The notes beneath the pieces are model-generated. The model saw nothing but the letters and a program-made list of their open reading frames with translations. It was not told the DNA's origin and searched no databases. The translations under genes were made by a program, and so were the position numbers. DNA of 64,000 nucleotides from Schizochytrium sp. TIO01 (taxonomy: Eukaryota; Protista; Bigyra: Labyrinthulomycetes): the NCBI GenBank assembly GCA_004764695.1, contig SMSO01000036.1, positions 1,984,001-2,048,000 on the forward strand, read 5' to 3'. Below are positions 1,785 to 58,529 of this stretch, piece by piece (position 1 is the stretch's first letter; every line of letters starts with the position of its first letter).

Positions 1785-3782
1785 ATGGCTCGAGCGGGCA
1801 AGGCCAAGGGCCGCAAGGACCTTAGCGGCGCCTTCAACGCAAAGCACTCGCTTCGTGCGAGCGGCAAGGCAGCCTTGGGTGCCTCTCTTAAAAGCGGCGG
1901 CAAGAACAGCAACGCAGCGTCCAAGAATGTCGCCAAGAACGTCAAGATCAAGGCCAAGGCAGCTGCTTTGAGCAACCCTTTCGAGGAGCGTGACAACCGC
2001 AAGCAGAAACGCGATGTCCTGAACCGCAACCTCAAGGGCTCCAAGCGCAATGTGGCTCTTGCTAGAAGTTTGGCGCACGAGAAGCGCAAGCGTACGCTTC
2101 TTGGCGAGTTCAAGGAGATGGGCAAAGCCAACTCTTTTCAAGATAAGCGTTTTGGAGAGAAGAATGAAGATATCTCCGAAGAAGAGAAGATGCTCGAGAG
2201 GTTCAAGAAACTTCGTTCCAAGCGCGGTCTCTATGACCTCAGCGACACGGATGGCAAGGGCGCTGCCAACCGTAAGAAGAACAAGGTCGAGTTCACACAC
2301 CTTGGCCAGAGTCTTTCAGAGTCTGGCGGCGCTGACATGGAAATGGAAGAGGAGTTCAAGCGGCTTCTGCGCGAAGAAGGCCTTGACGAAGACGACGGCA
2401 GCGACCCTGGTGAAAAGATTGATGCCAATGCTCTCATGGAGCAGATCCAGTCTGCCAGCAACAACGACGACCGGTCAAAGTCCAAGAAGGAGGTCATGCA
2501 GGAAGTTATTGCTAAAGCCAAAATGTTCAAGCTCAACCGCCAGCGCGAGAAGGAACAAGACGACGAAGAGCGTGAGCGCCTCGATGATGCCTTCAAGGGC
2601 CTCATGAGCGATGGACTCTTCCACCTGAGACCTACACGCCGTCAGCGTCAGGCCAAGGAAATGGAGGACATGATGGAGCGTCTTCGCAAGTCCAAGGAAG
2701 CAAAGAGCGGCGAAGAACAAGACACAGAGCAAAACGATAAACCCCAAAAGAGCACTGATGATGACGATGAAGATGAAGATGATGACTTCGATCGCACTGT
2801 TCGTGGACTTGTTTTTGAGGCACGTGCAGCTGCATCTGACAGAACATTGACTCCCGAAGAGCGCGCAAAACGCGAGTTTGAGAAGCTCAAGGAGCAGCAA
2901 GAAGCACTTGAGCGACGCATGAAGGGTCATTTCAGTGATGAGGAGGAGTCCGATGATGAGGACCTTTCCGGCAAACGACGCAAGCGCAAGAATCAGCCCA
3001 AGAAATCCTTCTTTGAGAGCACTGGCAGCGATGAAGAAGAGGCTGAGGAAGACGATGAAGAAGGCGAGGATGAGGACGAAGAAGCTGATGAGGATGAAGA
3101 GGAGGGTGACTCTGAGGATGATGATGATGACTCCGATGACTCCGATGCAGACCAGGAACTCGAACGCCACCTGCTGGAGCAGCTTGCTCTTCGTAAGAAG
3201 GAGGATGAAGCCAAAGCAAAGGCCAAGTCAACCAAACGCAAGGGCATCAGTATTGATCGTCGTGCCGACCTCATCGAGGAGGCTAAAGAAGAACTCCCTT
3301 TCATCCTTGATGCACCTGAATCTCACGGAGACCTTCTCAAGCTCATGGATAAATACAACTGTGCAGATAAAATGGGCGAGGTCGTAAAACGCATTAGAAC
3401 ATCAAACTCAATTCACCTTCTTGCTGAAAACCGCGAGAAGATGAACCGTTTCCTCGAAATTCTTGTCGATCACTACGTTTGGGTGGTCGAACGCCACGCA
3501 GCTGCTTGCAATGATTTCGAAGAAGACACCCCTGAGGGTCTTGTTACTTACAACGAGACTCTCAAAGCTTGCTTAAAAAGCATCTATGAACTCTGCCACG
3601 ACATCAAGGATACTGCCGGTCAGGTTTTCTGCAACCGTCTTGGACGCATGCAGTTAACACTTGGCAAACAACTCAGCAACGCCGCAGCGTTTGGCGCAAA
3701 TGCTGGTGGAGACTTTGGTTGCCTTTCCACTCACTTGAGTAAGGGAGGCTCACTGTATCATCGCAAAAAGGGAGGACACAAG
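1785..3782 (+). CDS. NOP14: Nucleolar protein 14 (SSU processome), exon 1
   Basis: Motifs NPFE, RKRTLLGEF..GKANSFQDKRFGE, FTHLGQSL, KSKKEVMQEVIAKAK, ASDRTLTPEE and ELPF match the Nop14 family. The frame runs 666 codons to an AG|GTAAGT donor at 3783 (phase 0). Confidence 0.93.
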
Positions 3783-4290
3783 GTAAGTGTATTGAATGAC
3801 TTGAAAAAAAATCTAAATTCAAGAGGGGAGTAGTGAAAGAGCTGTGCAGCTCTTTTGTCAGCAATCATGCACAGGGTTGTGCGTACATGTTTCAAGGGAG
3901 GTAGTGTGAAAGGTTAATACCAGCTTCAGTCAAATTCCCGAACGGCGAAAACTCATACTGTTTGGGGCCAAAAAGCTGGGAAACGAAAGGGTGGGATCCT
4001 CTCGGGGATCCCGGCGGCTATACCAGGTTTTTGTTGCCGACTTGTCCCATTGGACTGTCAAACGAACGCAACACTGTACTCAAATGGCCTGCCCACATTC
4101 CAAATGCAACATTTCATGCTACAAGAAGAAATATAGTCTCGTGAATCAGTCTGTTAATGTTGTTGACAATACGGGCCTGTATTATGAAAGGGACCTTGGT
4201 GGTAGGGGTGTCTAAAATTGCTTTTCATACGTGAATGGCTGAACTAACTTTTTCACATTGATGTAATCAATGTATTTGTCTCATTAACAG
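3783..4290 (+). other. Spliceosomal GT-AG intron (508 nt) of NOP14
   Basis: Donor GTAAGT at 3783, branch-like CTAAC at 4244-4248 and acceptor TTAACAG ending at 4290. Splicing joins ...GGHK to GAKGRMAME... in frame, giving 1046 aa. Confidence 0.9.
3920..4100 (+). ncRNA. Intronic box H/ACA snoRNA, predicted guide for the 18S pseudouridine equivalent to yeast Psi1181 (snR85/SNORA5-like target)
   Basis: Hairpin 1 has stems CCAGCTT 3920-26/AAGCTGG 3973-79 and CCCGAACGG 3937-45/CTGTTTGGG 3958-66. Pocket strands AGTCAAATT and GCC are complementary to 18S GGC-UU-AAUUUGACU. H box AAACGA (3981-86) lies 14 nt after the upper stem. Hairpin 2 base GGGTGGG 3989-95/CCTGCCC 4088-94 is followed by ACA at 4095-97. 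Confidence 0.75.
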
Positions 4291-5433
4291 GGAGCCAAAG
4301 GTCGTATGGCCATGGAACAGGAGAAAGAAGAACTTGAAGAAGAACTTGAGCTCTTCGGTGGTGGTGTCCGTGCAAGTGATTGCCGCTGCTGGCCTTCCGC
4401 TGGAGACCTTGCGTTCTTTCGCATTGTCGAGGCTGTCTTCCCAGTAACCGACTTTCGTCACCCAGTGGTGTCCCCATCGCAGCTTCTTCTAGGCCAGTAC
4501 CTTGCTCAATGTCCCATCCGCGGACCTCGTGACGTTGTTGCATGTCTTTGCACAGCCCAGCTCCTCGTTGATTTTTGCCGTGGTGCTGAGCGTCTTCCTG
4601 GTGAAGCATTCCTTTCTGTTGATGCTCTTCTTAACCAGGCCTTTCCTGCGAAGAAGAGCACCAGCAGTAACTTGGATGAAGCCGAGAAGCTCGACCTCGC
4701 CAAACGTCGTGTGTGCCCTCAGATGATCAAGGCCGGTCGTTGTGGTGTACGTAGCGAACACCTTGACTGGCTTCGCAAGGCCAAGATCTCCAAGGAAGCG
4801 CAACCTTTGTCTCTGACTGCTCTCCGTTATGATGAGGATGATTCTGAAGATGTGTCACATGTAGATAATGGCGTCATTGTACAGTCTCTTCTCTCTTTGG
4901 CTCAGCAGCTTGGCCACATGGCTGCAACCTCGCCTGTTGGTGACTCTTTGCTCCAGGGTATCGATGCTGCTTTGCAGCGCGCCAAGGGAGAGGAAGCTAA
5001 GACAATCTCGGATGTTGTATCCCGGGATGTGAAACATGTCAAGGCTAGCCGTAAACCCATGCGCCTCTTGGATGTTCAGGCTCGCGCTATCAAGTCGATT
5101 CGGCCTCTATTCAACGAGAACTACAAGTGGACCAAGGATGGCCACGATCCAGACCGTGCACGTGCTGAGCTCAAGAAGCTTAAACGACAGGCCCACCGCG
5201 AGCGCAAGGGCGTGGCTCGTGAATTGCGCAAGGACGCTCAGTTTCTTGCAGAGCAGCGTGAAACTGAGAACCAGTCTCGCATCTCTGCCTTGCGTGCAGA
5301 GCGCCAGCGCAACTTTGCTGAGCTTACCAACCAGGCTGGTGAAATGAACAAGGCAGTCCGTGAATTCGGTGCTACTGGTGGTGGTTCTCGCAATGTTGAT
5401 ATGCGCGGCCGTCGTCGTCAAACTCGGCAATAA
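4291..5433 (+). CDS. NOP14: NOP14 exon 2
   Basis: FPVTDFRHPVVSP, DPDRARAELKKLK..RERKGVARELRKDAQFLA are Nop14 C-terminal motifs. Stop TAA at 5431-5433. Confidence 0.93.
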   Translation, partial: GAKGRMAMEQEKEELEEELELFGGGVRASDCRCWPSAGDLAFFRIVEAVFPVTDFRHPVVSPSQLLLGQYLAQCPIRGPRDVVACLCTAQLLVDFCRGAERLPGEAFLSVDALLNQAFPAKKSTSSNLDEAEKLDLAKRRVCPQMIKAGRCGVRSEHLDWLRKAKISKEAQPLSLTALRYDEDDSEDVSHVDNGVIVQSLLSLAQQLGHMAATSPVGDSLLQGIDAALQRAKGEEAKTISDVVSRDVKHVKASRKPMRLLDVQARAIKSIRPLFNENYKWTKDGHDPDRARAELKKLKRQAHRERKGVARELRKDAQFLAEQRETENQSRISALRAERQRNFAELTNQAGEMNKAVREFGATGGGSRNVDMRGRRRQTRQ

Positions 5434-41782: not shown

Positions 41783-42713
41783 TATGTAGTAGTTTAGTTT
41801 AGTTTAAAATACATCTTATTTCTTATAATGTATTTTATGGAATTATGAATGAAGAAAAGACTTTGTTTAATTGTGAAGTGTTTTTTAAAATAAAAAATTA
41901 AAATTATTGTGTTTTTTTTTTTAATTATAGAGTTTTTAATTTTTAATTAAAAAAAATTAAATTATTTTCAATAATTTGATAGTGAGACGGTATTTTATTT
42001 AAAGTATGTTTGTTTATATTTTAATTTTCTATTTGTTTTTAATCAACTATTGTGCTCGTAGCTTCTAAGTATTTTTCAAGTTATTTTTGTTGCCATGACA
42101 ATGTGGTTGGAGTAAGAATAACATCCAATGGGCACACGTACCTTTGGTACATCATGGGAACACGATGAAGTGTTGCTCTAATTCAGCATGCTACAACATC
42201 TATCGTTGTAATGAATTGAAGTTTTCCCTTCGGTCCGAGCAAGTTAGCCAAAGAACCTCAAGACTCCTTCAAGACACATCTCTAGCTAGAGCTAGCTAGA
42301 GTCTCTAGCTAGCTAGCTAGCTACAAACTGCGAAACCCATATTTGCTTTTAATTTACCCATTTTGTCTCTGCAATATCTTTATGAATGCTGATTTCAATC
42401 TGAAGAAATTGCTACGGTCGTTGTCGTTGTTGTTATTGCTGAGGATTCGTCCTTCTTCGCCTCTGGCTTGGGACTCGAGCACTTAATCAATACCGCGACT
42501 CGAAGGCCGCCTTTGCGGACTCGATACGAGTCGAGATCTTGTATCGTGAGAGAAAGGCGGTCCCAAAAGACGAACTTGCGTATCGAGGCGCATCAAACTT
42601 GTCGTTGTGGACAGAGATCTGCCGACGGCTTTGGGACTATCTTTTTTGACGTTGACTTAGAATTTGTTGTTTCAAGAGACTCCAAATTTGTTGCGGGCAA
42701 GCTCAAAGGAGCT

Positions 42714-44333
42714 ATGTTGCCTCAGAGGAAGCTAGCCTTCAGTGGCGTGCTCCTCTTGATAGCGTGCTTATCAAGCTTGCTTGAGACAGTGCAAGCCCTG
42801 AAGCCAAACATCGTCTTTATCCTTGTGGATGATCTTGGATACACCGACTTTGGATACAAGAATGGTGGCGAGATTGATACACCTAATTTAGATGCAATTG
42901 CCCATCGCGGCATTGACTTCACCAGATACTATGTGCACTGCGTGTGCTCACCTAGCAGAGCAGCCCTCATGACTGGCCGTTATTCGCATCACACGGGAGT
43001 TCACAATTGGCTAGTACCTGTTGGCAACATTGGCGTGGGGCTCGACGAAGTCTTCATCAGCGAGAAGATGAACGAAGCTGGTTATGCCACTCATATGGTT
43101 GGCAAGTGGCACCTTGGCCACCACAAGTGGGATTACCTTCCCAATTACAGAGGCTTTGATTCCTACTACGGTATGCTTACCGGAGGTGGTTGCTACTTCA
43201 TGGGCCGTGCCAATGCAGAAGGATTCTGGTATCAGTATATCGAAACCACTGCCCCCAAATGCAATGTGGAATCTTGTGCAAGAATCCCATGGGAAGCCCA
43301 GACCAAGTACTCTACAGAAACATTCAGCGAAAAGGCAGTCGAAGTAATTGATCGTCATGCTGCTGCGTATAACTCCCAGCCACTTTTCCTCTACGTTGCC
43401 TATCAGGCTGTACACGCTGGAGGATGGCAGTTTACTCAAGTGCCCCCGCACTACGTCGACCCCTATTTAGATCGTATGAAGCCCGGCAAGCGCCAGCAAT
43501 TTGCCGGAATGGTGGCTGCCTTGGATTCAGGCATCGGAAACATTACAAGCGCTCTTGAGCGGAATGGCTACACAGACGAAAACACGTTGATTATTGTATC
43601 TACAGATAACGGAGGTCCTATTGAGCCTGTTGACGCAACTGGATCTAGCAACAGACCTTTTAGAGGCGGCAAACACTCCCTATATGAAGGCGGTGTACGC
43701 GGACTAGGCTTTGTTGCCGGTTATGGTATTCAACGTAAGAATACTACCTACGCCGGCCTCATGCACATCACGGACTGGTTTGCAACCCTTGCTGATGTTG
43801 CGGGATATTCATTGGACACCAAAAAGCCACTCGACAGCGTTTCTCACTGGGCCAAACTTTCAGCACCGGAGTCTTTCTCAGAAGAGGACATCCTGGCATC
43901 CCCTATGCGTACCGAAGTCGTCCTTGGTAACTCTTCTGACCATGGTATTGGCTTTGCTATGCTTGTAGATGATGAAGAAGGCAGGCAGTGGAAAATTGTC
44001 ACCGGCACTCCTGGTTTCCCAAACACATGGGGCACGTATAGCACTACTCCTGAAGAGCAGTTTCTCGCTGACAAGAAAGAGGGCGTGCCTTGCCCCAACA
44101 ACTTTTGCCTGTATGAAATCTCAAGTGACCCAGAAGAGCGCCATAATCTGTCTACCGACCCTGCTTATAAACAGGTTCTCAAAAAACTGAAGAAGGTCTT
44201 ATTAGATGAATTTGCAACAAGCCATGACCTCGTTGCCGACTGCGACATCAAACCTGTGTCCAAGGTTGAAGAGCACGTCAATCACGCATGGTGGCCTTAT
44301 TGTGATAGCACAAGTGCTGGTGTAGAGAAATAA
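42714..44333 (+). CDS. Secreted formylglycine-dependent sulfatase (arylsulfatase B-like), copy 1
   Basis: Signal peptide from the ATG at 42714, then KPNIVFILVDDLG, CSPSRAALMTGRY (CxPxR), GKWHLG, STDNGG, PFRGGKHSLYEGGVR and DPEERHNL. Confidence 0.95.
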   Translation: MLPQRKLAFSGVLLLIACLSSLLETVQALKPNIVFILVDDLGYTDFGYKNGGEIDTPNLDAIAHRGIDFTRYYVHCVCSPSRAALMTGRYSHHTGVHNWLVPVGNIGVGLDEVFISEKMNEAGYATHMVGKWHLGHHKWDYLPNYRGFDSYYGMLTGGGCYFMGRANAEGFWYQYIETTAPKCNVESCARIPWEAQTKYSTETFSEKAVEVIDRHAAAYNSQPLFLYVAYQAVHAGGWQFTQVPPHYVDPYLDRMKPGKRQQFAGMVAALDSGIGNITSALERNGYTDENTLIIVSTDNGGPIEPVDATGSSNRPFRGGKHSLYEGGVRGLGFVAGYGIQRKNTTYAGLMHITDWFATLADVAGYSLDTKKPLDSVSHWAKLSAPESFSEEDILASPMRTEVVLGNSSDHGIGFAMLVDDEEGRQWKIVTGTPGFPNTWGTYSTTPEEQFLADKKEGVPCPNNFCLYEISSDPEERHNLSTDPAYKQVLKKLKKVLLDEFATSHDLVADCDIKPVSKVEEHVNHAWWPYCDSTSAGVEK

Positions 44334-45297: not shown

Positions 45298-46953
45298 ATG
45301 ATCCTGAAAGCTCTGGTCCTGGCATTTGCTTTGGTGCTTTGCCTTGCTCAGTTTGCGAAAGCTGCTGAGAATAATGGGACGAAACCAAACATTGTATTCA
45401 TCGTAATTGATGATCTCGGCTATGCAGATATCGGCTACCGCAATGACAACGAGATCGATACACCTCACCTAAATTCAATTGTGGGGCGTGGTATTGATTT
45501 GCAACGTTACTACGTTCATACAGTTTGCTCCCCGAGCCGTGCTGCACTCATGACTGGTCGCTTCTCGCACCACACAGGCGTCCATAATTGGCTTCATCCG
45601 ATTGCCAACATTGCTGTCGAACTTGACGAAGTCTTTCTTAGCCAAAAGCTCAAGGACGCTGGCTATGCTACGCACATGGTAGGCAAGTGGCACCTTGGGC
45701 ATCACAAGTGGAGTTACACCCCTACCTATCGCGGTTTTGACACATACTTCGGATACTACACAGGTGGTGGCGACTACTTCATGGGCCGGTGTGACTCAGA
45801 GCGATACTGGTTCCAGTACCTTGATGCTAAAGCGCCAAATTGCAATGAAGAAGAAACCTGTGTACGAATCCCTTGGGAAATCCAGGTTGAATACTCAACA
45901 GAGGTTTTCTCTCGTAAAGCCGTAGAGGTTGTTGAACGCCACGCAGCTCACGAGAGAGACAAACCTCTCTTTCTTTATCTTGCTTTTCAAGCAATGCATG
46001 CGGGCTTTTTCCAACCTAACCAAGTCCCTCCCTACTGGGTGGAACCCTACCTTAAGCGAATGGGACCAGGGCAACGTCGCCAGTTTGCAGGCGCTCTTGC
46101 AGCTGTTGATTCTGCTGTAGGAAACCTCACAGATGCTCTTGAGCGTAATGGGTTTACCGATGAAAACACTTTAATTATTGTATCCACAGACAATGGCGGT
46201 CCTGTTCATGTTGGAGACGCGGTAGGTGCTCGCAATACCCCCTATCGTGGTGGTAAGCACTGCCTCTACGAAGGAGGTGTCCGTGGCGTTGCTTTTCTAG
46301 CGGGTTATGGAATTAAACGCAAGGGTAAATCTTACAGTGCTCTCATGCATATTACCGATTGGTTTGCCACACTAGCTGATGTTGCGGGCTTCTCGCTTGA
46401 GACCAAGCGTCCGTTGGATTCCGTTTCCCATTGGGCACGCCTCTCTGCAGATTCTGATGAGGAACTTGCAGATGCAGAACCTCTGCGTACAGAAATTGCA
46501 CTTGGAAACGTTTCTGATTATGGTTACGGATTTGGCATGATTATCGACGATGATGAAGGCCACCAGTGGAAAATTATTGCTGATTCTCCTGGGTATCCTT
46601 CTGTTCTCACAGAGGAGGACCCTGCATCAGATCCCCACGGCTTGGAAACGAAAGGAAAGTCTTGCCATAATGGATTCTGCCTCTTCGAGCTTACATCTGA
46701 TCCTCAAGAAAGCAATGATCTTGCGGAAGACCCTGCATACGCTTCGATTCTTGCAAAGTTGCGCAAACGCATTCTTCAAGAGATTGAAACGTTCCATGAT
46801 ATTCCCAAAGACTGTGATATCGAGGCCACTCCACGTTATGAACTGCATGTCGGCAATGCTTGGTGGCCGTACTGCCCCGACGATGACGACAGCCACGTTT
46901 CACAAGAAATTGAATTTGCAGCTAAGCAGCATGGATTTCTCGCAGAAAAGTAA
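45298..46953 (+). CDS. Secreted formylglycine-dependent sulfatase (arylsulfatase B-like), copy 2
   Basis: Signal peptide plus the same motif set (CSPSR, GKWHLG, TDNGG, YEGGVR). Colinear with copy 1. Confidence 0.95.
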   Translation: MILKALVLAFALVLCLAQFAKAAENNGTKPNIVFIVIDDLGYADIGYRNDNEIDTPHLNSIVGRGIDLQRYYVHTVCSPSRAALMTGRFSHHTGVHNWLHPIANIAVELDEVFLSQKLKDAGYATHMVGKWHLGHHKWSYTPTYRGFDTYFGYYTGGGDYFMGRCDSERYWFQYLDAKAPNCNEEETCVRIPWEIQVEYSTEVFSRKAVEVVERHAAHERDKPLFLYLAFQAMHAGFFQPNQVPPYWVEPYLKRMGPGQRRQFAGALAAVDSAVGNLTDALERNGFTDENTLIIVSTDNGGPVHVGDAVGARNTPYRGGKHCLYEGGVRGVAFLAGYGIKRKGKSYSALMHITDWFATLADVAGFSLETKRPLDSVSHWARLSADSDEELADAEPLRTEIALGNVSDYGYGFGMIIDDDEGHQWKIIADSPGYPSVLTEEDPASDPHGLETKGKSCHNGFCLFELTSDPQESNDLAEDPAYASILAKLRKRILQEIETFHDIPKDCDIEATPRYELHVGNAWWPYCPDDDDSHVSQEIEFAAKQHGFLAEK

Positions 46954-49900: not shown

Positions 49901-50441
49901 CAACTAGGAATCTTCATCAGCACTCAGGCGCTGCTTACTCTTCGTAGACACTGTACCTAGATGCTTCTTCTCGCATCCCGCCAAAGCTCTTTCTTGTCTC
50001 AAGGCCCTTTCTTGCAACAAAACTGTGTGCGTGGGTATATGGATGTATGTATGTATGTATGTATGAATGTATGAATGTATGTATGAATGTACCTACCTAC
50101 ATCGACGTGTAATGTAATAAATCATTCCCATTGCTTTTTCTTTTCTTTTCTTCTTCTGCTGTTGGTACCAAGGTAAGGACGAGTAGATCACTACTATGGG
50201 GGTGCGTTTATTAATGTTTCCTTTTAAAGTTTCTCTTTTCATATGTTCTTTTGATGATGATTACGACTTAGAGGAAGACACTCTTGACGCGTGCAACCTC
50301 GAAGAATATCGACGAGGCCTCGTGCAAAAGCCAAAAGAGCTCAAGTACGTCTGGCCGAGTTTGTCAGCGGACCTCTAACGCATTTTGTGCGTGCCAGCTT
50401 TAGTAGGGTACTTGGTGGTTAAGTTAGCTGTGGAACCAACC

Positions 50442-51425
50442 ATGGGCTGTGCAGCGAGCTCTGGTGCTGGGGAAACTACCTTGTCGAGTCCTCACGGAGC
50501 ATCGGATGAGGATGGGGCCCTGACGTACAATGAAGCGCTGGTATTCATTAAACCTCATGCAGCAACAAAAGAGGCAAAGGAATTCGTGGTCGAGTTCCTT
50601 CAGAACAGGGGAATCGAGGTGCTGAAGGAGGGCAAGTGGCTAGGCCCGGAGATTGACAAGAAGGGTATCATCGATGAGCACTATGCACACATCGCCAAGA
50701 TTGCACTCAAAGTGGACCCAGCAGACATTGTTGTGACAGATGAGAAAAAAGAACTTTTCGAATCTACCTTTGGAGAGACCTGGACCCAAGCTCTGGATGA
50801 CGGCAAGCTCATCAACCTTAAGACTTTTGAGGATGAGTTCACTGAGCTTACCTTTTCTGAAATTAATCGCTTGTGGCTTGGCGATTTGGAAAAGATCAAG
50901 CTGGCGCCCGGTACCTATGTAGGATACTTTCCAGATCAGGACCGCTATGTCATGAACCCATTCTATGCCAATATGCGTGCCGTCTACACTAATGCGGACG
51001 CCAAAGTTACCTACTTTGTCATCCGTTTTGAGGAGAACAATATTCCATGGAAGGTCTTCCGCAGCGACATCATTGGTGCTACAGACCCTGCCCAGGCCCA
51101 CGAAGGATCCCTCCGGGCTTCTATGCTTGCGAAGTACAAGGCCCTCGGACTTAAGTCCGAGCCAAACACTAGTGACAATGGAGTCCACGCCAGTGCTGGC
51201 CCATTCGAAGGCCTTAAGGAGCGTATTGTCTGGACAGGTGCCAAGATTGAGACTGACCTTTTTGGCAAGGAACTCATCGCTCAGGGAGTCAGTCGTGCGC
51301 TTATTAACTCATGGCTTGATAACGAGGTCGTGACAATTAATGGTGAGACTGACCATGCGTTTGACCTGCTGGAGGACCTCGACTCAAGCAAGGCCCTTGA
51401 ACTTGCTTTGCATGCGTCAAGTTGA
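50442..51425 (+). CDS. Nucleoside diphosphate kinase-like protein with N-terminal MGC acylation motif
   Basis: ALVFIKPHA, FRSDIIGATDP..EGSLR and DNGVHAS (catalytic His motif). ATG at 50442 in context ACCATGG gives MGCAASS. Confidence 0.85.
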   Translation: MGCAASSGAGETTLSSPHGASDEDGALTYNEALVFIKPHAATKEAKEFVVEFLQNRGIEVLKEGKWLGPEIDKKGIIDEHYAHIAKIALKVDPADIVVTDEKKELFESTFGETWTQALDDGKLINLKTFEDEFTELTFSEINRLWLGDLEKIKLAPGTYVGYFPDQDRYVMNPFYANMRAVYTNADAKVTYFVIRFEENNIPWKVFRSDIIGATDPAQAHEGSLRASMLAKYKALGLKSEPNTSDNGVHASAGPFEGLKERIVWTGAKIETDLFGKELIAQGVSRALINSWLDNEVVTINGETDHAFDLLEDLDSSKALELALHASS

Positions 51426-52039: not shown

Positions 52040-55000
52040 TTATGCTGCAGCGTTCTTTTGCTTTTGAACTTTAGGACTCAAATCATCTGCATCTGCAGGG
52101 TTGTCCACGTAAACGATGTCACAACGAGAAAGGTTATCGCGCATATCTTGAATTGAGTGATGAACATTATTAAAATCCATGCCTCGACGCACCCAGTGAG
52201 TAAGAAGCTCACTAAGTGACCAGGTTGAGCGACCTAGCTTGATGGGATCGTCAATTTCATCTCCCATAAGTGTTGTGCGGCCAAGACTGACTCTCTTGTG
52301 GTTACGAGGCAAATCCTCCCACTTCAGGTCATGCGCAAATTCAAAGCGATCTTGCCGCTCCCACTCTACCCACTGACCCAGCCAAGTGTTGAACTCTTCC
52401 TCAGTTATATCCAGTACCCGGCGCGATACACGGATGACTTCTTCACCCGGAATGGTACTTCCATAGACCATGAAGTGAGCTGACACTGGAAGATTCAAGG
52501 GTAGCCGGAACTGAATTTCATATTGCAAGAAGACACACACATCATCTACATTTTGAAAGCCCCCACGATCTTCAATACGCTTTTGCGCTGCTTCGTGAAC
52601 ATATTGTAGGTTCATAATCCGGCGACCAAGCGCACGCAGCTTTTCGCGATCACCACGCGCATGCGCAACTGCGCCAACAACCTCAAGCTGGTTCAAAGCC
52701 CAAATAGGCTTATCTTCACACGCATCGATTGCATCAGCCATGCGGGAACAAAGTTCATCTCGTGCCTCGTCATCCTTTGCTACATTCATCAGCATCTCGA
52801 CAACTCGCTCAGCTAACCCACGCCGCGTTGAGGGATTGCGGTATTCACGTGAGTCCCGAAGCATGCTTAGAAAGGTGAGCACACTATCTCTATAAAACGA
52901 GTCAACTTTCTCATCAAGTGGCTTAAGCACATCAAAGTCAATGTCTGACTCTATCAGAAGGCGCATAAGCCGTGGAGGGCGGCCTGTGGCGGCTGCTTTC
53001 CAGAAAAGAACTGCATTTGAAAAGCTTTCAAAGTCTCCGTCATGGCTTAGAGTTTCCAAGCCACCCTCTTCACCAGCGCTGATAAAGTCAAGACCGGCGA
53101 GGTCATTCTCTTCATCCTCTTCACGCTCAAAAACTGCATCGCACATCCTTAGATCTCCTGCAACTATCCCGTCACGGATCCAGTTCATGCACTGTAGACG
53201 ATCAGGGATAGAAAAGTCAGAGGTTATCGCTTGAAGGACCTCTGGATCAATGCCTGTACCTTTGAGCATAAATCTGCGACAAATAATAGCAGGCTCAGTA
53301 GCGGGGTTTCGCCCTATACTACGAACACGAGTTAGCCAATTAGATGGTCTACGCCATGGCCTAGTCCGTTGAGTTTGGGCTTCCTTATACGCGTCTCTTT
53401 GAACAGCAGCATCGATACTCTTTTGGAGCAAAGAGTTCAATATCTCGCGTGGAATTGTTGTGAGTTTGGGAGCTACATTTACCACTAGATAGATATCCAC
53501 ATCTAGGTCAGGGCTGATTTCGCAGAGCTCGGGTAGATTTATTAACGCAAGAGAATTGATGACGACACCAGATGAAATATGTGTCATGCAAGGTAATACA
53601 GAGAGCAGAAGACCATGGTTGATCATGGTGTACCCTAGTTGTGAGTTGTATTGCTGTAAGGCATCCTCTCCACTGGGCTGAGATGCCTCCTCATCAAGAT
53701 CTTCGGTTCCTTCCGAAAGGTAGTCTTCATCAATAGCGTCTTCTGCCTCAAGCTCTTGACTTGATACATCATCATCACGGAAAACATCCACTCCAGGAGC
53801 AATTTCTTGCAAATTTGCCTCATCAACGCCCTCTTCTTCAGCTTCATCTTCCCCTAACTTAAGTTCGTGAATGTCGAGCTCCTCTTGACCCTCGACCCTT
53901 TCATGTATTGTATCAAGCTCGATGTGGCTCCCAGAGCTTTTTGATCTTGAAACACGCGAAGAATTTTGTCTCGGTGGATATAGACGAGTAATAGAGCGCC
54001 GTGCACCGCCTAACAAAGTATTACGACGCAGCCACTTATAATCTACTTGTCTGGAGTTTGCTGTCCACGCTCGCTGGCGGTGACGCACGACTGTTGCGAA
54101 ATGCTCATTCAGATACCCTTCAAGCGTCTTAGAGGAACTTCGCCACTCTACAGGTATACTGTGGTCAAGACGACGCTCAGCTTGCTGTGTGCTTTTGCGC
54201 CGGCTCCTGAGTCGTTTGGCTTTGGAATTGCTCAAAACCGGAGCAGGTTGTTCCAAACGAAACCCAACTGGTAGCGTTTCAAAAGTATCGCAAGAATGTA
54301 TGGCAAACGTTTCTCGTACTTGCATTTTTTTGGGGATGTTTTTGAGAGCACGGCACGAAGCGACAACCAAGTTACCGTGGTAGATACCATTGTCAGGAAT
54401 ATCTACAAGGCTGTCCAAGAACGCAAACAGGCAGTCGCCGTACACAGTAAGACGTTTAGGAATGGACTTGAACATCGGGCATCCGATCAACATAAATGAA
54501 CCAAAGTGTTCTTCTTGAGTAAAATCCTCATCATTTGTAGTAGGAATACCAGCCAGCGCAGGCCAGCCTACTTCAATTTTGTTCTGGCTAAGATCTGATA
54601 GGCCCATGCAATAGCGAATGTCAAGTCCACCTCGACAAATCATTTCCTGGGGCAGTTTTTGCAATGACGGACAGTTACGCAGGCGTACAAAACCAGGTTT
54701 GAATACGTCAGTTGTAATGATCTCAGAATCTCTCCATGATTTAACCAAAGGTAGCTCATCCCCTACAATCATTTTCGATCCGCCAATCTCTTCTAGCGTC
54801 ATACAATGCGAAATATCAAGCATACCGAATACCCGCTCCATCTCGACTTTCCTTAGACGGGGACAAAAGCGGAATGACACGTTGCTGGTTTTTGTGAGCG
54901 TGAGAATGCCGGGGTCTTGCTGACCAACAAGAGAGCCTGGATGCACGATTTCGAGACTTTGCATATGTGTACACATTAATTGTCCCAACACACGAACAGG

Positions 55001-58000
55001 GTGCAATTCACGAATACCAGTGCCAGACAAATTTAGATCACCTGTGACAAATTTCATTGCAAAAGTCTCAAGACTTGAACATCCACTTAAATCAACATCG
55101 CCTGAGCAACTCTGCAACCCAACCACATACCCGTCGTCCCGAACACGCGAGATTAGCCCTGCCATGAAACCATTCTTTAATTCACGCAGTTGCGTGCAGC
55201 TCTGGGCGCTGAGTGATGCAACATGAATTGCAGGAATAACCTCTAAAGATGTACAATGGTCCAACTGCAGTTTAACTCGACCAGGTGCAGCATTAAAAAC
55301 ATCATCTGGAATATGAGCCAAATTTGCGCATTTAGAAAGGTTTAGAGTGCGCAATGTTTGGGGCAGAGGACCTGGAATAGTGCGCAGTCCGGTGCTACCA
55401 CGGAGGTTAAGAATACGTAGGCCACTAAGCATACCAAGATCCAGAGGCCTTGCGATAGGTTCCACATGGCTTGCGTTACCAGAGTTCTGAGAAAGGCTGT
55501 CAGAATGTAAGTCTTCACCAACAAAGTGAGGGCACTCACTCAACTTGAGTTTGTTGCATCCCGTTCGGAGCTTGATATCTTCCAACAGAGGCAGGTTGTA
55601 GAGGCTCAGCTCACCTTCTGCCTCATCTTTTGTTGCCAAACCAACGTCCACGCGCGTGAGATGTTCACAATTATCTACACGCACTAACTGCCAAATTCCA
55701 TGGAGAACAAGACCTTCGAGCATATTGCAGCTATCGAGATACAAATATGACATGCCGCTACCCTCGATGTCACCCAAGTTTTCTACGCCAACGTTCTCGA
55801 GCCTAATTCGAAGATTCAAGCCAGATTTAATGGAGACAACGTCATCAGAGATCTGGGTGAGATTTTGCATACCATTAAGGTACAACTCTGCGTCATCGTA
55901 CTGATCAATGAAGATTGAGTGAGCGAGACGTTCCATAGATGGTGAATCCGTAATTCTTAACAACTGGATTTGAAGCCGACCACCAGCTAAACGTTGCAAG
56001 GAGTTACATTCGACAATTTCCAGGGAGACAGGGAAGTCTGGGCCATCGCTATCCCACAACACATCAATGTTCGGGCAATGTTGGACATTAAGATGCCCAA
56101 CTTCATTTGTAGTGTGCCATTCTGGAAGTGACTTCACAGGTAACCAACGAAGCGTCAGCCTTGGAGTCTCTAGCTTACCTTGAAATTTCTCGATAGGGAA
56201 CCGAAGAAATTCGCATGAAAAGCTTGCCTTTATATCATCAACCCACTCCCGCAGTTGAAGAGTCTCAGTGCTCGAGGTCGTTTCTTCATTATCATCTGCA
56301 TCATTGTCAATCTCATTATTCATGCCATCATCGGACTCATTTCCCGAGTGGTTCGAACCTTCATATACAGGGTTAGTTAAGTTGTTTTGACTATCCAACT
56401 CGCTTGAATTAGCGACTGCTGGAAAATTTCCATCAACCTCGTCAACAATAAGCCCGGGAATTCGTCCGCTGGTATTCTCGAAACCTCCATTAAAGCTTTG
56501 GAGACTCATGATCTGGTCGCGAAACTCAAAAGATCCACGAAGAGAGAATGAGCGCACTACGATAGACCCCTCGCAAAGACGAGGGGGGATCTCGATACCA
56601 CTAATAATCAATTCGTGCGCTGGAGCATGTACTCCGGCGGCGATGGGAGTATTGGTATCAACGCATTGAATCTCAATAGAAGTTTCATTCGGGCTGGTAG
56701 GTTCCTCATCACAGTATAAAACACCTTCACAGAGTCTATGCAAAGAGCCCTGCTCAATTCGTAGGCTCCCTGCTACATGTAAATCGCCATTGCAGAGAGT
56801 ATTCAGTTGAGGACAGCGCTGAATTCTCGTAAATGTACCAAGTGAGAGTTTATCAATGCCGATATAAGCTAGCTGGGGCAGGTATAAAAGCTCGAGTTTC
56901 TGAAGAATTGTGACCTTTGGTGGACAACTTGAAAGCGCTTGGCAGTTTTGCAGTCTGAGCTTCTTCAAGACAATCTCCATATTACTGCTTGATTCCAGAA
57001 ATTCAAGATCAGGACAATTTTCAACTTCAATAATTGCAGGTTCTTCTGCGGAAGTGATTTGATCAAAATCTATGGATTGTAAACCACTGACAGCACTCAG
57101 TTTCTTGTAGTTGGCCTCTAAGGTCTCAATCATTTTCTGCGAGCTTCCTCGGCAGCTTATGACCGAGAGCTTGTTACATGTCCAGTGCGAGAAGTCACCT
57201 GAGGGTAGCGAACAACCTCGAAAGGAAAGGTCTCCGTTCACACTCACATTGGGAGGGAGAGCTGGAATATCGAGATTTTCGAATGAAAAGTTTCCTTCAA
57301 TAGCAATCCTGGATGGCTCCCCATCATTTGATGAAATCAAGCGCGCGTTTTGCTCACCAAACTCGTAGAATACGCGTTCTAAACCATAAAGGTTTTCGGT
57401 ATTCACACCCTTTGCCCACTCCTCCAGGTAAAGCTGTAATTCACTCGACATGCTGAGGCCAGTAGGCCCTTCTCCATCGTTGTCTAGAGGAAGACGCGAC
57501 TCGCCTAGGGTTTGCCAGCCGTCATCTCCTAGACTAAGACTCAAAGCAAGCAAGTGGTCAATTTCCTCAGGGTCTAGAGCGCCTTGCTCCATAAGAGCAG
57601 TAAGAGCATCAAGGTCATCTTGTATTGTGCTTGGATTTGTACCACTCGTATCGATTGCATGCTCTTCTTCAGTACCATTACCTTCAACGTATTCAGGATC
57701 ATGAAGTTGCAACTGTACCTCAAGGTCAGGAGGAGCATCATGCTCATCCAGGGATGCGATATGACTTTGACCGTGGCTTGATCTGCCTCCTCTGCTTGTA
57801 TCAGTTGACCGGCTTGTGCGGCTTGTGCGGCTTGTGCGGCTTGTGCGGCTTGTGCGGCTTGTGCGGCTTGGTGCGGCTTGTGCGGCTGATGCGGCTGGCA
57901 TTGTATTGTGTCTGCATGTCGTTGGCTTGTGCAGGTTGGAGGTCGCCGAATTCGCCATCGTTTGCAAAATGGTCATCTTCAATTTCGTCGTCACTATCAT

Positions 58001-58529
58001 GGTTGTGATGACTGAGTCTATGGCTCGATCTGCCGCTTCTAGTCGAGCCACTGGCTCTGCTGAGTCTGCTCGAGACTCGAGACCTGAGCTCACGCAGCTG
58101 CTCTTGAGCTTCTACTTGGGAATCCAATTGAGCAAGGCCGTTCATATCTTCGAAATTTGTAGAAGGATGCGGATCATTAGACTGTACGGCAACCTCTCCA
58201 GTATATTGATTTTCTTCTTCATGAAGAACTTCACCCTCAGCGTTATTACATTCGATTGCGTCCCCATGAGCAAGGCTTCTACGGGAACTGCGAGCACCAG
58301 ACGTACGCCTCGATGAGTGTGAAGATTCTGCATCTTGAGGAGTACGGTCTTCAACATTGTCCTGACGAGCAAGGCTTCTTCGGGATCTGCGATCACCTGA
58401 GGTGCGTCTTAATGGGGTCGAATGTTCTGCATCTGGGGACGCAGGAGCTTCCACTTGTGGAGTTGAAACAGGCAATGAGCCCCGGCGTTGCAGCATACCT
58501 GCGGCACACATGAGTTTTCTGACGACCAT
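52040..58529 (-). CDS. Large LRR-repeat protein with C-terminal NEL (novel E3 ligase) domain; one apparent 1-bp insertion at 57870/57871
   Basis: ATG at 58529 (CAACCATGG). Removing one G in the 9-bp repeat joins ORF 57801-58529 to ORF 52040-58093, giving 2162 aa. There are many LxLxxCxxLxxLP and VxGxLxL repeats. The C-terminus has DAIDACEDK, LRALGRRIMNL, VDDVCVFLQYE, LNLPV..M and FNTWLGQWVEW. Confidence 0.88.
57810..57891. repeat. 9-bp coding tandem repeat (CGGCTTGTG)n encoding Ser-Arg-Thr on the minus strand
   Basis: Six perfect units, then one 10-nt unit (57864-57873), one perfect unit and one variant. Confidence 0.95.

Follow-up and report, generated by a model that had tools for sequence, protein, structure and literature searches.

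A resident thraustochytrid gene for a predicted multi-domain ubiquitin ligase that joins a NEL domain to a U-box-like tail

In teaching, ubiquitin ligases of the NEL type figure as a device that bacteria alone invented, to subvert the ubiquitin of their hosts. What, then, is a gene with such a domain doing on a protist chromosome, and is it truly a NEL gene, truly resident there and still intact? The question is raised by a locus of the thraustochytrid Schizochytrium sp. TIO01 that lies within a 64,000-nucleotide stretch of contig SMSO01000036.1 (assembly GCA_004764695.1, positions 1,984,001 to 2,048,000 of the forward strand), hereafter the window, whose own numbering is used throughout. An earlier reading, made from the letters alone (below, the sequence-only reading), had placed there a ligase of the bacterial effector type, with a long array of leucine-rich repeats (LRRs) followed by a NEL domain, and had proposed that it was acquired horizontally and domesticated. 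Our analysis indicates that the locus is very probably an intact, resident thraustochytrid gene for a large cytosolic multi-domain ubiquitin ligase (E3) of an expanded, bacterially related family, in which the NEL domain is followed by a second, U-box-like module.

The identity of the NEL domain is confirmed by sequence profiles, alignments and predicted structure. Residues 1738–1913 of the 2017-residue product match the Pfam NEL model (PF14496) at 86 bits, far above the gathering cut-off of 24 bits (E 3.1e-24, model positions 29–214 of 223), and the same stretch is weakly matched by the NCBIfam models for IpaH, SlrP and SspH2. A phmmer search against the sequences in the PDB returned NEL effectors only (IpaH9.8, IpaH3, IpaH1.4, IpaH2.5, IpaH7.8, SlrP, SspH1 and SspH2; E 1e-8 to 1e-4), with DACEDK of the query aligned on ESCEDR of IpaH9.8 and IpaH3. 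The codon that the sequence-only reading had singled out as that of the catalytic cysteine (52718-52720) is the correct one and encodes Cys1792, and its second acidic motif at 52541-52549 (VDD) is aligned with the VDE of IpaH; the peptides it quoted are likewise present on the minus strand, all of them within the 2017-codon frame. The Cys and Asp of the CxD motif are invariant, both among the intact paralogues of this genome (17 of 17) and across a wider set of aligned sequences (33 of 33). An AlphaFold2 model of residues 1680–2017, built with an alignment of paralogues and relatives as input, attained a predicted local distance difference test score (pLDDT) of 90.8 and a predicted template modelling score (pTM) of 0.84. 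When this model was compared with the PDB using Foldseek, the best matches were IpaH3 (E 5e-5) and then SspH2, SspH1 and SlrP (E up to 4e-4, probability 1.0), with TM-scores that were modest at 0.40–0.46. Residues 1691–1922 are therefore a genuine NEL domain with an all-helical fold and an intact catalytic CxD, and on this central point the sequence-only reading was right.

That reading stopped short of the last ~100 residues, which fold as a separate, U-box-like domain. In the AlphaFold2 model a small beta/alpha domain follows the helical NEL, and U-boxes are the next Foldseek matches behind the NEL structures. We aligned the tail of this protein with those of 15 paralogues and 7 bacterial relatives (alignment A3); in a comparison of the resulting profile with PDB sequences, the five best matches were the U-boxes of Prp19 and E4B (E 0.002–0.005), with LubX next at ~0.1. 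The 92 residues of the tail, modelled by themselves (pLDDT 87.4), were matched by Foldseek to the U-boxes of E4B, Prp19, E4A and LubX with a probability of 0.85–1.0. VIA-align, which is independent of Foldseek, placed the E3 domain of AvrPtoB first (Z 7.1, root-mean-square deviation 2.7 Å over 75 residues) and Prp19 at Z 4.9 and 2.1 Å, and almost all of its top 50 matches were U-box, RING or SP-RING domains. The protist tails read L/F-x-G-D/E…D-P-V…W-S and those of the bacterial relatives C-P-I/L-T/S-Q-D…P-V…Y-D/E-Y/F; the tail of one bacterial relative matched the Pfam U-box model at E 0.028 (15 bits, under the cut-off). On the strength of the predicted structures, residues 1930–1994 would form a U-box/RING-like domain, a beta-beta-alpha cross-brace without zinc ligands. 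When the NEL–U-box region was modelled in complex with a UBE2D-like ubiquitin-conjugating enzyme encoded in this genome (E2; L100:1489-1929:+), the score was 0.00, which counts neither for nor against binding.

The NEL gene of the window is one of many in this genome. The genome-wide search returned 19 NEL matches on 10 contigs; 17 are intact and carry CxD, and the genome holds at least 18 NEL genes. One match, L018/L019 (C31:2872556-2873105), is split by a frame change with a TAA inside and is probably a pseudogene. Three paralogues (L005, L007 and L016) form a tandem cluster within 17 kb (C24:1949952-1966773), and a further one, L012, lies on the same contig as the present gene, 180 kb from it. 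An exhaustive HMMER search of 1.84 billion representative sequences retrieved 384 proteins with E <= 0.001, of which 75 reached E <= 1e-30, and almost every one of the 150 top-scoring hits combined the NEL with the U-box-like tail. Members from the thraustochytrid Hondaea fermentalgiana have been named after their other domains: 'Ryanodine receptor' (SPRY), 'Importin alpha' (armadillo), 'Nephrocystin-3' (TPR and kinase) and 'RPP5' or 'TAO1' (LRR). Across the family the NEL–U-box cassette is conserved, while the recognition modules joined to it vary (LRR, armadillo, SPRY, SAM and TPR-kinase); the Pfam search found no SAM, SPRY or ARM domain in the protein studied here. 

Its closest relative by NEL sequence (47–55% identity) is the paralogue L006/P0002, a SAM–LRR–NEL–U-box protein of 3,458–3,468 residues that shares the cassette but is far longer and has the SAM domains that are absent here. 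The two are sisters in a FastTree phylogeny (support 99), a relation that the IQ-TREE run does not settle. No Hondaea orthologue of this particular gene was found, whereas five other paralogues of this genome pair one-to-one with Hondaea genes in the IQ-TREE phylogeny, indicating that the expansion predates the split from Hondaea. Beyond these two thraustochytrids, Mucochytrium quahogii, a parasite of clams, has an MMETSP protein that UniProt labels 'NEL domain-containing protein'. Records under the name of the dinoflagellate Durusdinium trenchii (P0010, P0033, P0052, P0065, P0070 and P0168), NEL genes and a TRM1 gene among them, come from contigs of 5–11 kb (~11 kb for the NEL genes) and look more like thraustochytrid genes than like those of other named groups. 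We suspect that they are labyrinthulomycete contamination, the other possibility being that the family exists in one more lineage of eukaryotes: P0010 is nested within a thraustochytrid paralogue group (IQ-TREE), and the Durusdinium TRM1-like record is 44% identical to thraustochytrid TRM1, above any oomycete or alga.

On the bacterial side, a profile built from second-tier hits was run against prokaryotes, each species being represented by a single genome. The sequence-only reading had taken IpaH, SspH, SlrP and NopM as the models for this protein, yet they are not its nearest relatives: the best prokaryotic matches came from Rhabdochlamydiaceae, Verrucomicrobiae and other uncultured metagenome-assembled genomes (MAGs), with the NELs of Shigella, Salmonella, Bradyrhizobium and Burkholderiales far behind. 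The family profile matches bacteria of the Planctomycetes–Verrucomicrobia–Chlamydiae (PVC) type over both NEL and tail at 256–305 bits, and classical NELs over the NEL only at 76–147 bits. The bacterial loci L020-L027 (from Rhabdochlamydiaceae, Verrucomicrobiae and uncultured MAG contigs) encode proteins of 560–820 residues in which Cys-containing LRRs and a NEL precede a U-box tail of canonical appearance, an architecture for which we found no description in the literature. The Verrucomicrobiae copy stands amid dense, co-directional bacterial open reading frames on a 151-kb contig.

Phylogenies were computed with IQ-TREE (LG+C20+F+G4, 61 rows) and FastTree (174 rows), which agree on the grouping. 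In the IQ-TREE phylogeny the NEL–U-box proteins are split from the classical NELs with support of 100/100; a single clade (100/100), on a long stem of 1.29 changes per site, unites all sequences from this genome, from Hondaea and from 'Durusdinium', and the named PVC MAGs form another (100/99). The NEL–U-box cassette shares ancestry with the bacterial LRR–NEL–U-box proteins. A single horizontal transfer into the protist lineage, earlier than the divergence from Hondaea, is the most likely history and the simplest reading. Transfer from bacterium to protist seems the likelier direction because bacteria hold several deep NEL lineages. Of the earlier proposal of horizontal acquisition, the link to bacteria is supported, the eukaryotic clade standing beside bacterial NEL–U-box lineages; the direction is not proved by the tree. 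Viral contigs in IMG/VR, scanned with two signature peptide patterns of the family, yielded no relative, a weak argument against a viral vector.

The N-terminal half of the protein is harder to classify. LRR_EndoS is matched at 24 bits, below its cut-off of 27.9; the NCBIfam models for XopL and XopAE are matched at E 4e-7 and 1.5e-6, and LRR_1, LRR_4 and LRR_RPS2 near E 0.01. A motif model finds ~20 LxLxxCxxLxxLP units in residues 374–1276 as opposed to 0–2 in shuffled sequences, a count that is circular to the extent that the seeds came from the same protein. In phmmer searches of PDB sequences the region reached E 0.1–0.9 only, to the LRR of an NLR and to 4fcg, and in the ESM Atlas LRR-labelled clusters appeared at only 0.86–0.87, a lead at best. 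The bacterial relatives give equally weak matches of the LRR_EndoS type and carry a very regular LxLxxCxSLxxLP array, so the repeat type seems common to both. The 'long LRR array' announced by the sequence-only reading is weakly supported by curated LRR profiles, which respond only below threshold. No signal peptide is apparent at either candidate N-terminus, nor is there a convincing transmembrane segment (the maximum Kyte–Doolittle mean over 19 residues, 1.71, is located in the pre-NEL region), and a membrane or secreted protein was rejected on these grounds.

The gene is also larger than was first thought. The extent 52340-57320 given by the sequence-only reading is too small at both ends, since the frame runs to a stop at 52040 and upstream to at least 58093 (Table 1). 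It is a single uninterrupted frame for which no intron is needed; its first ATG is codon 32, followed by others at codons 40, 46, 65 and 168, and the part from 52650 to 57839 is covered without joints by contigs from four sequencing runs. The sole public protein for the locus (P0001) is an 1850-residue call that starts at Met168, from a 7.8-kb contig, and lacks the N-terminal ~170–310 residues.

Table 1. Features of the NEL gene, in window coordinates
Feature	Position	Strand	Remarks
Main open frame	52040..58093	-	2017 codons + stop
Upstream frame, Ser/Arg/acidic-rich, ATG at 58529	57801..58529	-	242 codons; one base out of register with main frame
9-nt tandem repeat AGCCGCACA (Ser-Arg-Thr), 9.6 copies	57810..57896	-	includes one 10-nt unit at 57863-57872
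Residues 1-250, low-complexity, probably disordered	57344..58093	-	without domain match
Residues 374-1276, ~20 irregularly spaced Cys-containing LRR-like units, putative recognition module	54266..56974	-	weak profile matches and motif count
Residues 1285-1480, linker: basic, then acidic, low-complexity	53654..54241	-	no Pfam match
Residues 1481-1690, pre-NEL region: hydrophobic LRR-like cap, then linker	53024..53653	-	
Residues 1691-1922, all-helical NEL domain	52328..53023	-	Pfam envelope, residues 1738-1913, = 52355-52882
Catalytic motif Cys1792-Glu1793-Asp1794 in family signature DACxDKPIWALN	52712..52720	-	
Residues 1930-1994, U-box/RING-like beta-beta-alpha domain without zinc ligands	52112..52306	-	predicted structure
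Residues 1995-2017, acidic/basic C-terminal tail	52043..52111	-	low model confidence

At the 5' end the sequence-only reading overlooked a junction between two frames. The upstream frame and the main frame, which we searched separately and never joined, overlap and meet within the Ser-Arg-Thr repeat: the upstream frame ends in …SRISRTSRT and then goes off register, and the main frame continues SRTSRTSRT… from the same point. A motif of the form S-R-x-G-R-S-S-H…S-H…D/E occurs on both sides of the junction, each time in the frame of that side. In the DNA run X13, a contig of 12,260 nucleotides spans the repeat with 19 nucleotides fewer, that is, two units and one base; in X1, X2 and X17 the contigs break within the repeat, and their loose ends fit the window only after a shift of one base. 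In these four other data sets the frames are in register and give ~2,160 codons, from 58529 to 52040. In other strains or alleles the upstream frame probably supplies the genuine N-terminus, and the one-base offset either belongs to an allele of the sequenced strain or is an assembly error in the repeat.

The gene is a resident nuclear gene of the thraustochytrid. It lies 2 Mb into a chromosome-scale contig of a 64-Mb, 37-contig eukaryotic assembly, and the other long frames in the window encode Nop14, TRM1, a three-repeat Myb protein, two sulfatases and an NDK-like protein, in keeping with the eukaryotic flanks that had been reported for the locus. The best named relative of TRM1 is that of Hondaea fermentalgiana (60% identity), far above other named organisms, which makes the source a thraustochytrid from a genus other than Hondaea. 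A 6.5-kb stretch with the gene was found in 20 runs from 10 studies, at 75–88% of sampled words, and contigs of 7–12 kb from other runs pass unbroken out of the gene on either side. Two of the runs, which we guess to be RNA, show a drop in depth across the 5' repeat (43 to 17 and 35 to 5–8), whereas the DNA runs are flatter and have no such step; this suggests transcription. Between strains and alleles the main frame differs at 16 synonymous and 11 non-synonymous positions, and none of the listed differences falls within the compared part of the NEL region (52650-53450), a pattern that fits purifying selection. At 56400-56516 two alternative contigs of 117 nucleotides occur at unequal depth in the DNA runs X1 and X13; these are heterozygous alleles and imply a diploid or a mixed sample, with allele divergence across the gene at ~0.5–1% of sites.

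Among the neighbours, Nop14 is encoded by two plus-strand frames, 1785-3833 covering the first half of its Pfam model and 4306-5433 the second, with a gap of ~470 nucleotides between them, reflecting either an intron or a frame break. The sulfatase genes stand in tandem on the same strand (42468-44333 and 45298-46953). Convergent with the NEL gene, a plus-strand frame of 346 residues (50385-51425) has a C-terminal NDK match below threshold (23 bits against 27), and its product appears to be a divergent NDK-like protein. Scans of the window for tRNA and Rfam features found none.

How firmly, then, does this gene stand as an intact E3 of its owner? Several observations weigh against that picture. 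Pfam's U-box model (PF04564) finds no match by sequence in this tail or in the tails of four paralogues, which is why the U-box assignment is made at the level of fold, and the canonical Cys-Pro-Ile start kept in the bacterial relatives is lost in the protist tail. The LRR assignment is weakly supported, drawing as it does on sub-threshold profile matches and a partly circular motif count. The RNA status of the two runs is guessed. With a GC content at third codon positions of 0.42, against 0.43–0.69 in the housekeeping neighbours, and a codon-usage correlation of 0.58, below theirs, the gene shows a weaker codon bias that fits either low expression or a younger gene. The IQ-TREE run does not fix the branching order among the eukaryotic, the PVC and a third, unnamed clade, so neither donor nor direction is established. 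Finally, given the one-base offset, translation of the allele in the window may begin further downstream, or its 5' end may be damaged.

This last point is an argument for a decaying or non-functional relic, in which the offset within the repeat has cut off the N-terminus and the remainder is drifting. The weak codon bias and the broken paralogue L018/L019 elsewhere in the genome would fit such a relic, but 2017 codons without a stop, intact catalytic Cys and Asp residues, and strain differences that are mostly synonymous and spare the compared NEL part would not; contigs of the two presumed RNA runs moreover cover the gene with a depth that varies between its parts as in RNA, and the offset, being absent from four other data sets, may be confined to one allele or to the assembly. 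We regard decay as improbable. Bacterial or viral contamination, or a mis-joined assembly, might be suspected of any eukaryotic NEL, the domain being otherwise described only in bacteria, and codon usage less like that of the housekeeping neighbours points the same way. It is nevertheless hard to reconcile with a position 2 Mb inside a chromosome-scale contig between eukaryotic genes, with paralogues on 10 contigs, with orthologues of the family in an independently sequenced thraustochytrid (the five one-to-one Hondaea partners), with recovery of the same sequence in 10 studies and of contigs reaching both flanks, with a flat GC content over the window or with the lack of an IMG/VR relative by signature patterns. 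Contamination, which the sequence-only reading had also thought unlikely, is in our estimate extremely improbable. A viral island was rejected on the same evidence. The product could, alternatively, be an effector that is secreted or delivered to hosts, prey or competitors rather than an internal ligase; some labyrinthulomycetes are parasitic, Mucochytrium quahogii, which parasitises clams, has a member of the family, and the family is descended from or allied to bacterial effector-like proteins. Against this speak the very large size of the protein, two candidate N-termini neither of which resembles a signal peptide, the lack of a convincing hydrophobic segment, and the SAM, SPRY, armadillo and kinase-TPR domains with which the family is combined, all typical of intracellular proteins; we consider a role as effector very improbable.

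Taking the gene as that of an intact internal ligase, a mechanism can be outlined. The domains, the catalytic motif, residency, family size and phylogenetic placement are established here, whereas it is inferred that the protein acts as a ligase, is autoinhibited and recruits an E2, and so are its substrates and its role in the cell. The domain order runs from a probably disordered N-terminus through ~20 Cys-containing LRR-like units and a low-complexity linker to the NEL and the U-box-like domain. By what is reported for NEL enzymes, a ubiquitin-charged E2 would hand its ubiquitin to Cys1792 as a thioester, from which it would pass to a substrate bound at the LRR region. If IpaH and SspH are a guide, the LRR region may also keep the NEL inactive until a ligand binds. 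The U-box-like domain may serve to bring in the E2, the part that RING1 plays in RING-between-RING (RBR) ligases, giving a two-step enzyme of the RBR kind. The variety of modules for recognition, the three paralogues clustered in tandem on C24 and the lineage-specific duplicates resemble expanded E3 or receptor families in conflict with microbes, and on that likeness the family might have an immune-type role in such conflict, a hypothesis to which we give a minority share of our belief. A more far-reaching possibility is that a single uptake of a bacterial LRR–NEL–U-box protein founded a new eukaryotic class of two-module E3, in which the U-box would dock the E2, the NEL Cys would relay the ubiquitin, and LRR members, the present gene included, would act as intracellular sensors of microbes or viruses that start ubiquitination once a ligand frees the NEL; taken as a whole, this seems to us unlikely.

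A NEL review of 2022 and another review of October 2026 confine NEL ligases to bacteria, for the most part to pathogens among the proteobacteria, and a paper of 2019 mentions a NEL-like domain in NLR-like genes of Klebsormidium. In the searchable literature we found no paper that links IpaH or NEL with thraustochytrids or describes this family. The statement of the sequence-only reading that NEL lacks host counterparts agrees with the reviews, which list bacteria only, but holds less than fully in view of the UniProt-labelled Mucochytrium protein and the Klebsormidium mention. What is new is a set of NEL ligases encoded by a eukaryote together with a U-box-like partner domain, the sequences themselves being already public and one of them automatically labelled. 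They depart from the textbook picture in that NEL appears as a resident, expanded and diversified eukaryotic family fused to typical eukaryotic recognition domains, a natural case in which the fold of a 'pathogen weapon' presumably works with its owner's own ubiquitin system. Thraustochytrids, which are grown and engineered, offer a tractable setting for NEL function outside the effector role. The family also points to an unstudied group of NEL–U-box proteins in protist-associated Chlamydiota and Verrucomicrobiota, and the tandem of a Cys-dependent ligase with a RING-type module raises a mechanistic question about how the E2 is recruited.

Set beside known systems, the protist protein has in common with the classical NEL effectors (IpaH, SspH1, SspH2, SlrP and NopM) the Pfam NEL domain, the aligned Cys-x-Asp, the helical fold and, putatively, recognition repeats N-terminal to the NEL. 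It differs from them in sequence (~20–25% identity, with the signature CxDK(PIWALN) in place of the classical CxDR), in being 3–4 times longer with low-complexity regions, and in the U-box-like domain after the NEL, which the classical proteins do not have. Unlike type III effectors it is encoded by a eukaryotic gene without a secretion context; as a eukaryotic chromosomal gene in a separate clade (100/100), it should not be filed as an effector of the IpaH/SspH type. The bacterial L020-L027 proteins are closer, sharing the order of Cys-containing LRR-like repeats, NEL and U-box-like tail and the same superclade (100/100), but they are short (560–820 residues), carry CxDR and begin their U-box with Cys-Pro-Ile/Leu…Pro-Val, where the protist tail has L/F-x-Gly…Asp-Pro-Val. 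The predicted fold of this tail is like that of the U-box/RING-like E3 domains of E4B/Ufd2, Prp19, CHIP, LubX of Legionella and AvrPtoB of Pseudomonas; in the protist protein, however, it stands in tandem behind a Cys-dependent ligase domain, an arrangement that we did not find described in the literature. A working analogy is offered by the RBR ligases Parkin and HOIP, which likewise combine an E2-docking RING-type module and a separate catalytic-Cys domain in one chain, although their Cys domain is not homologous to the NEL and the order is reversed, the Cys domain coming first in the thraustochytrid protein.

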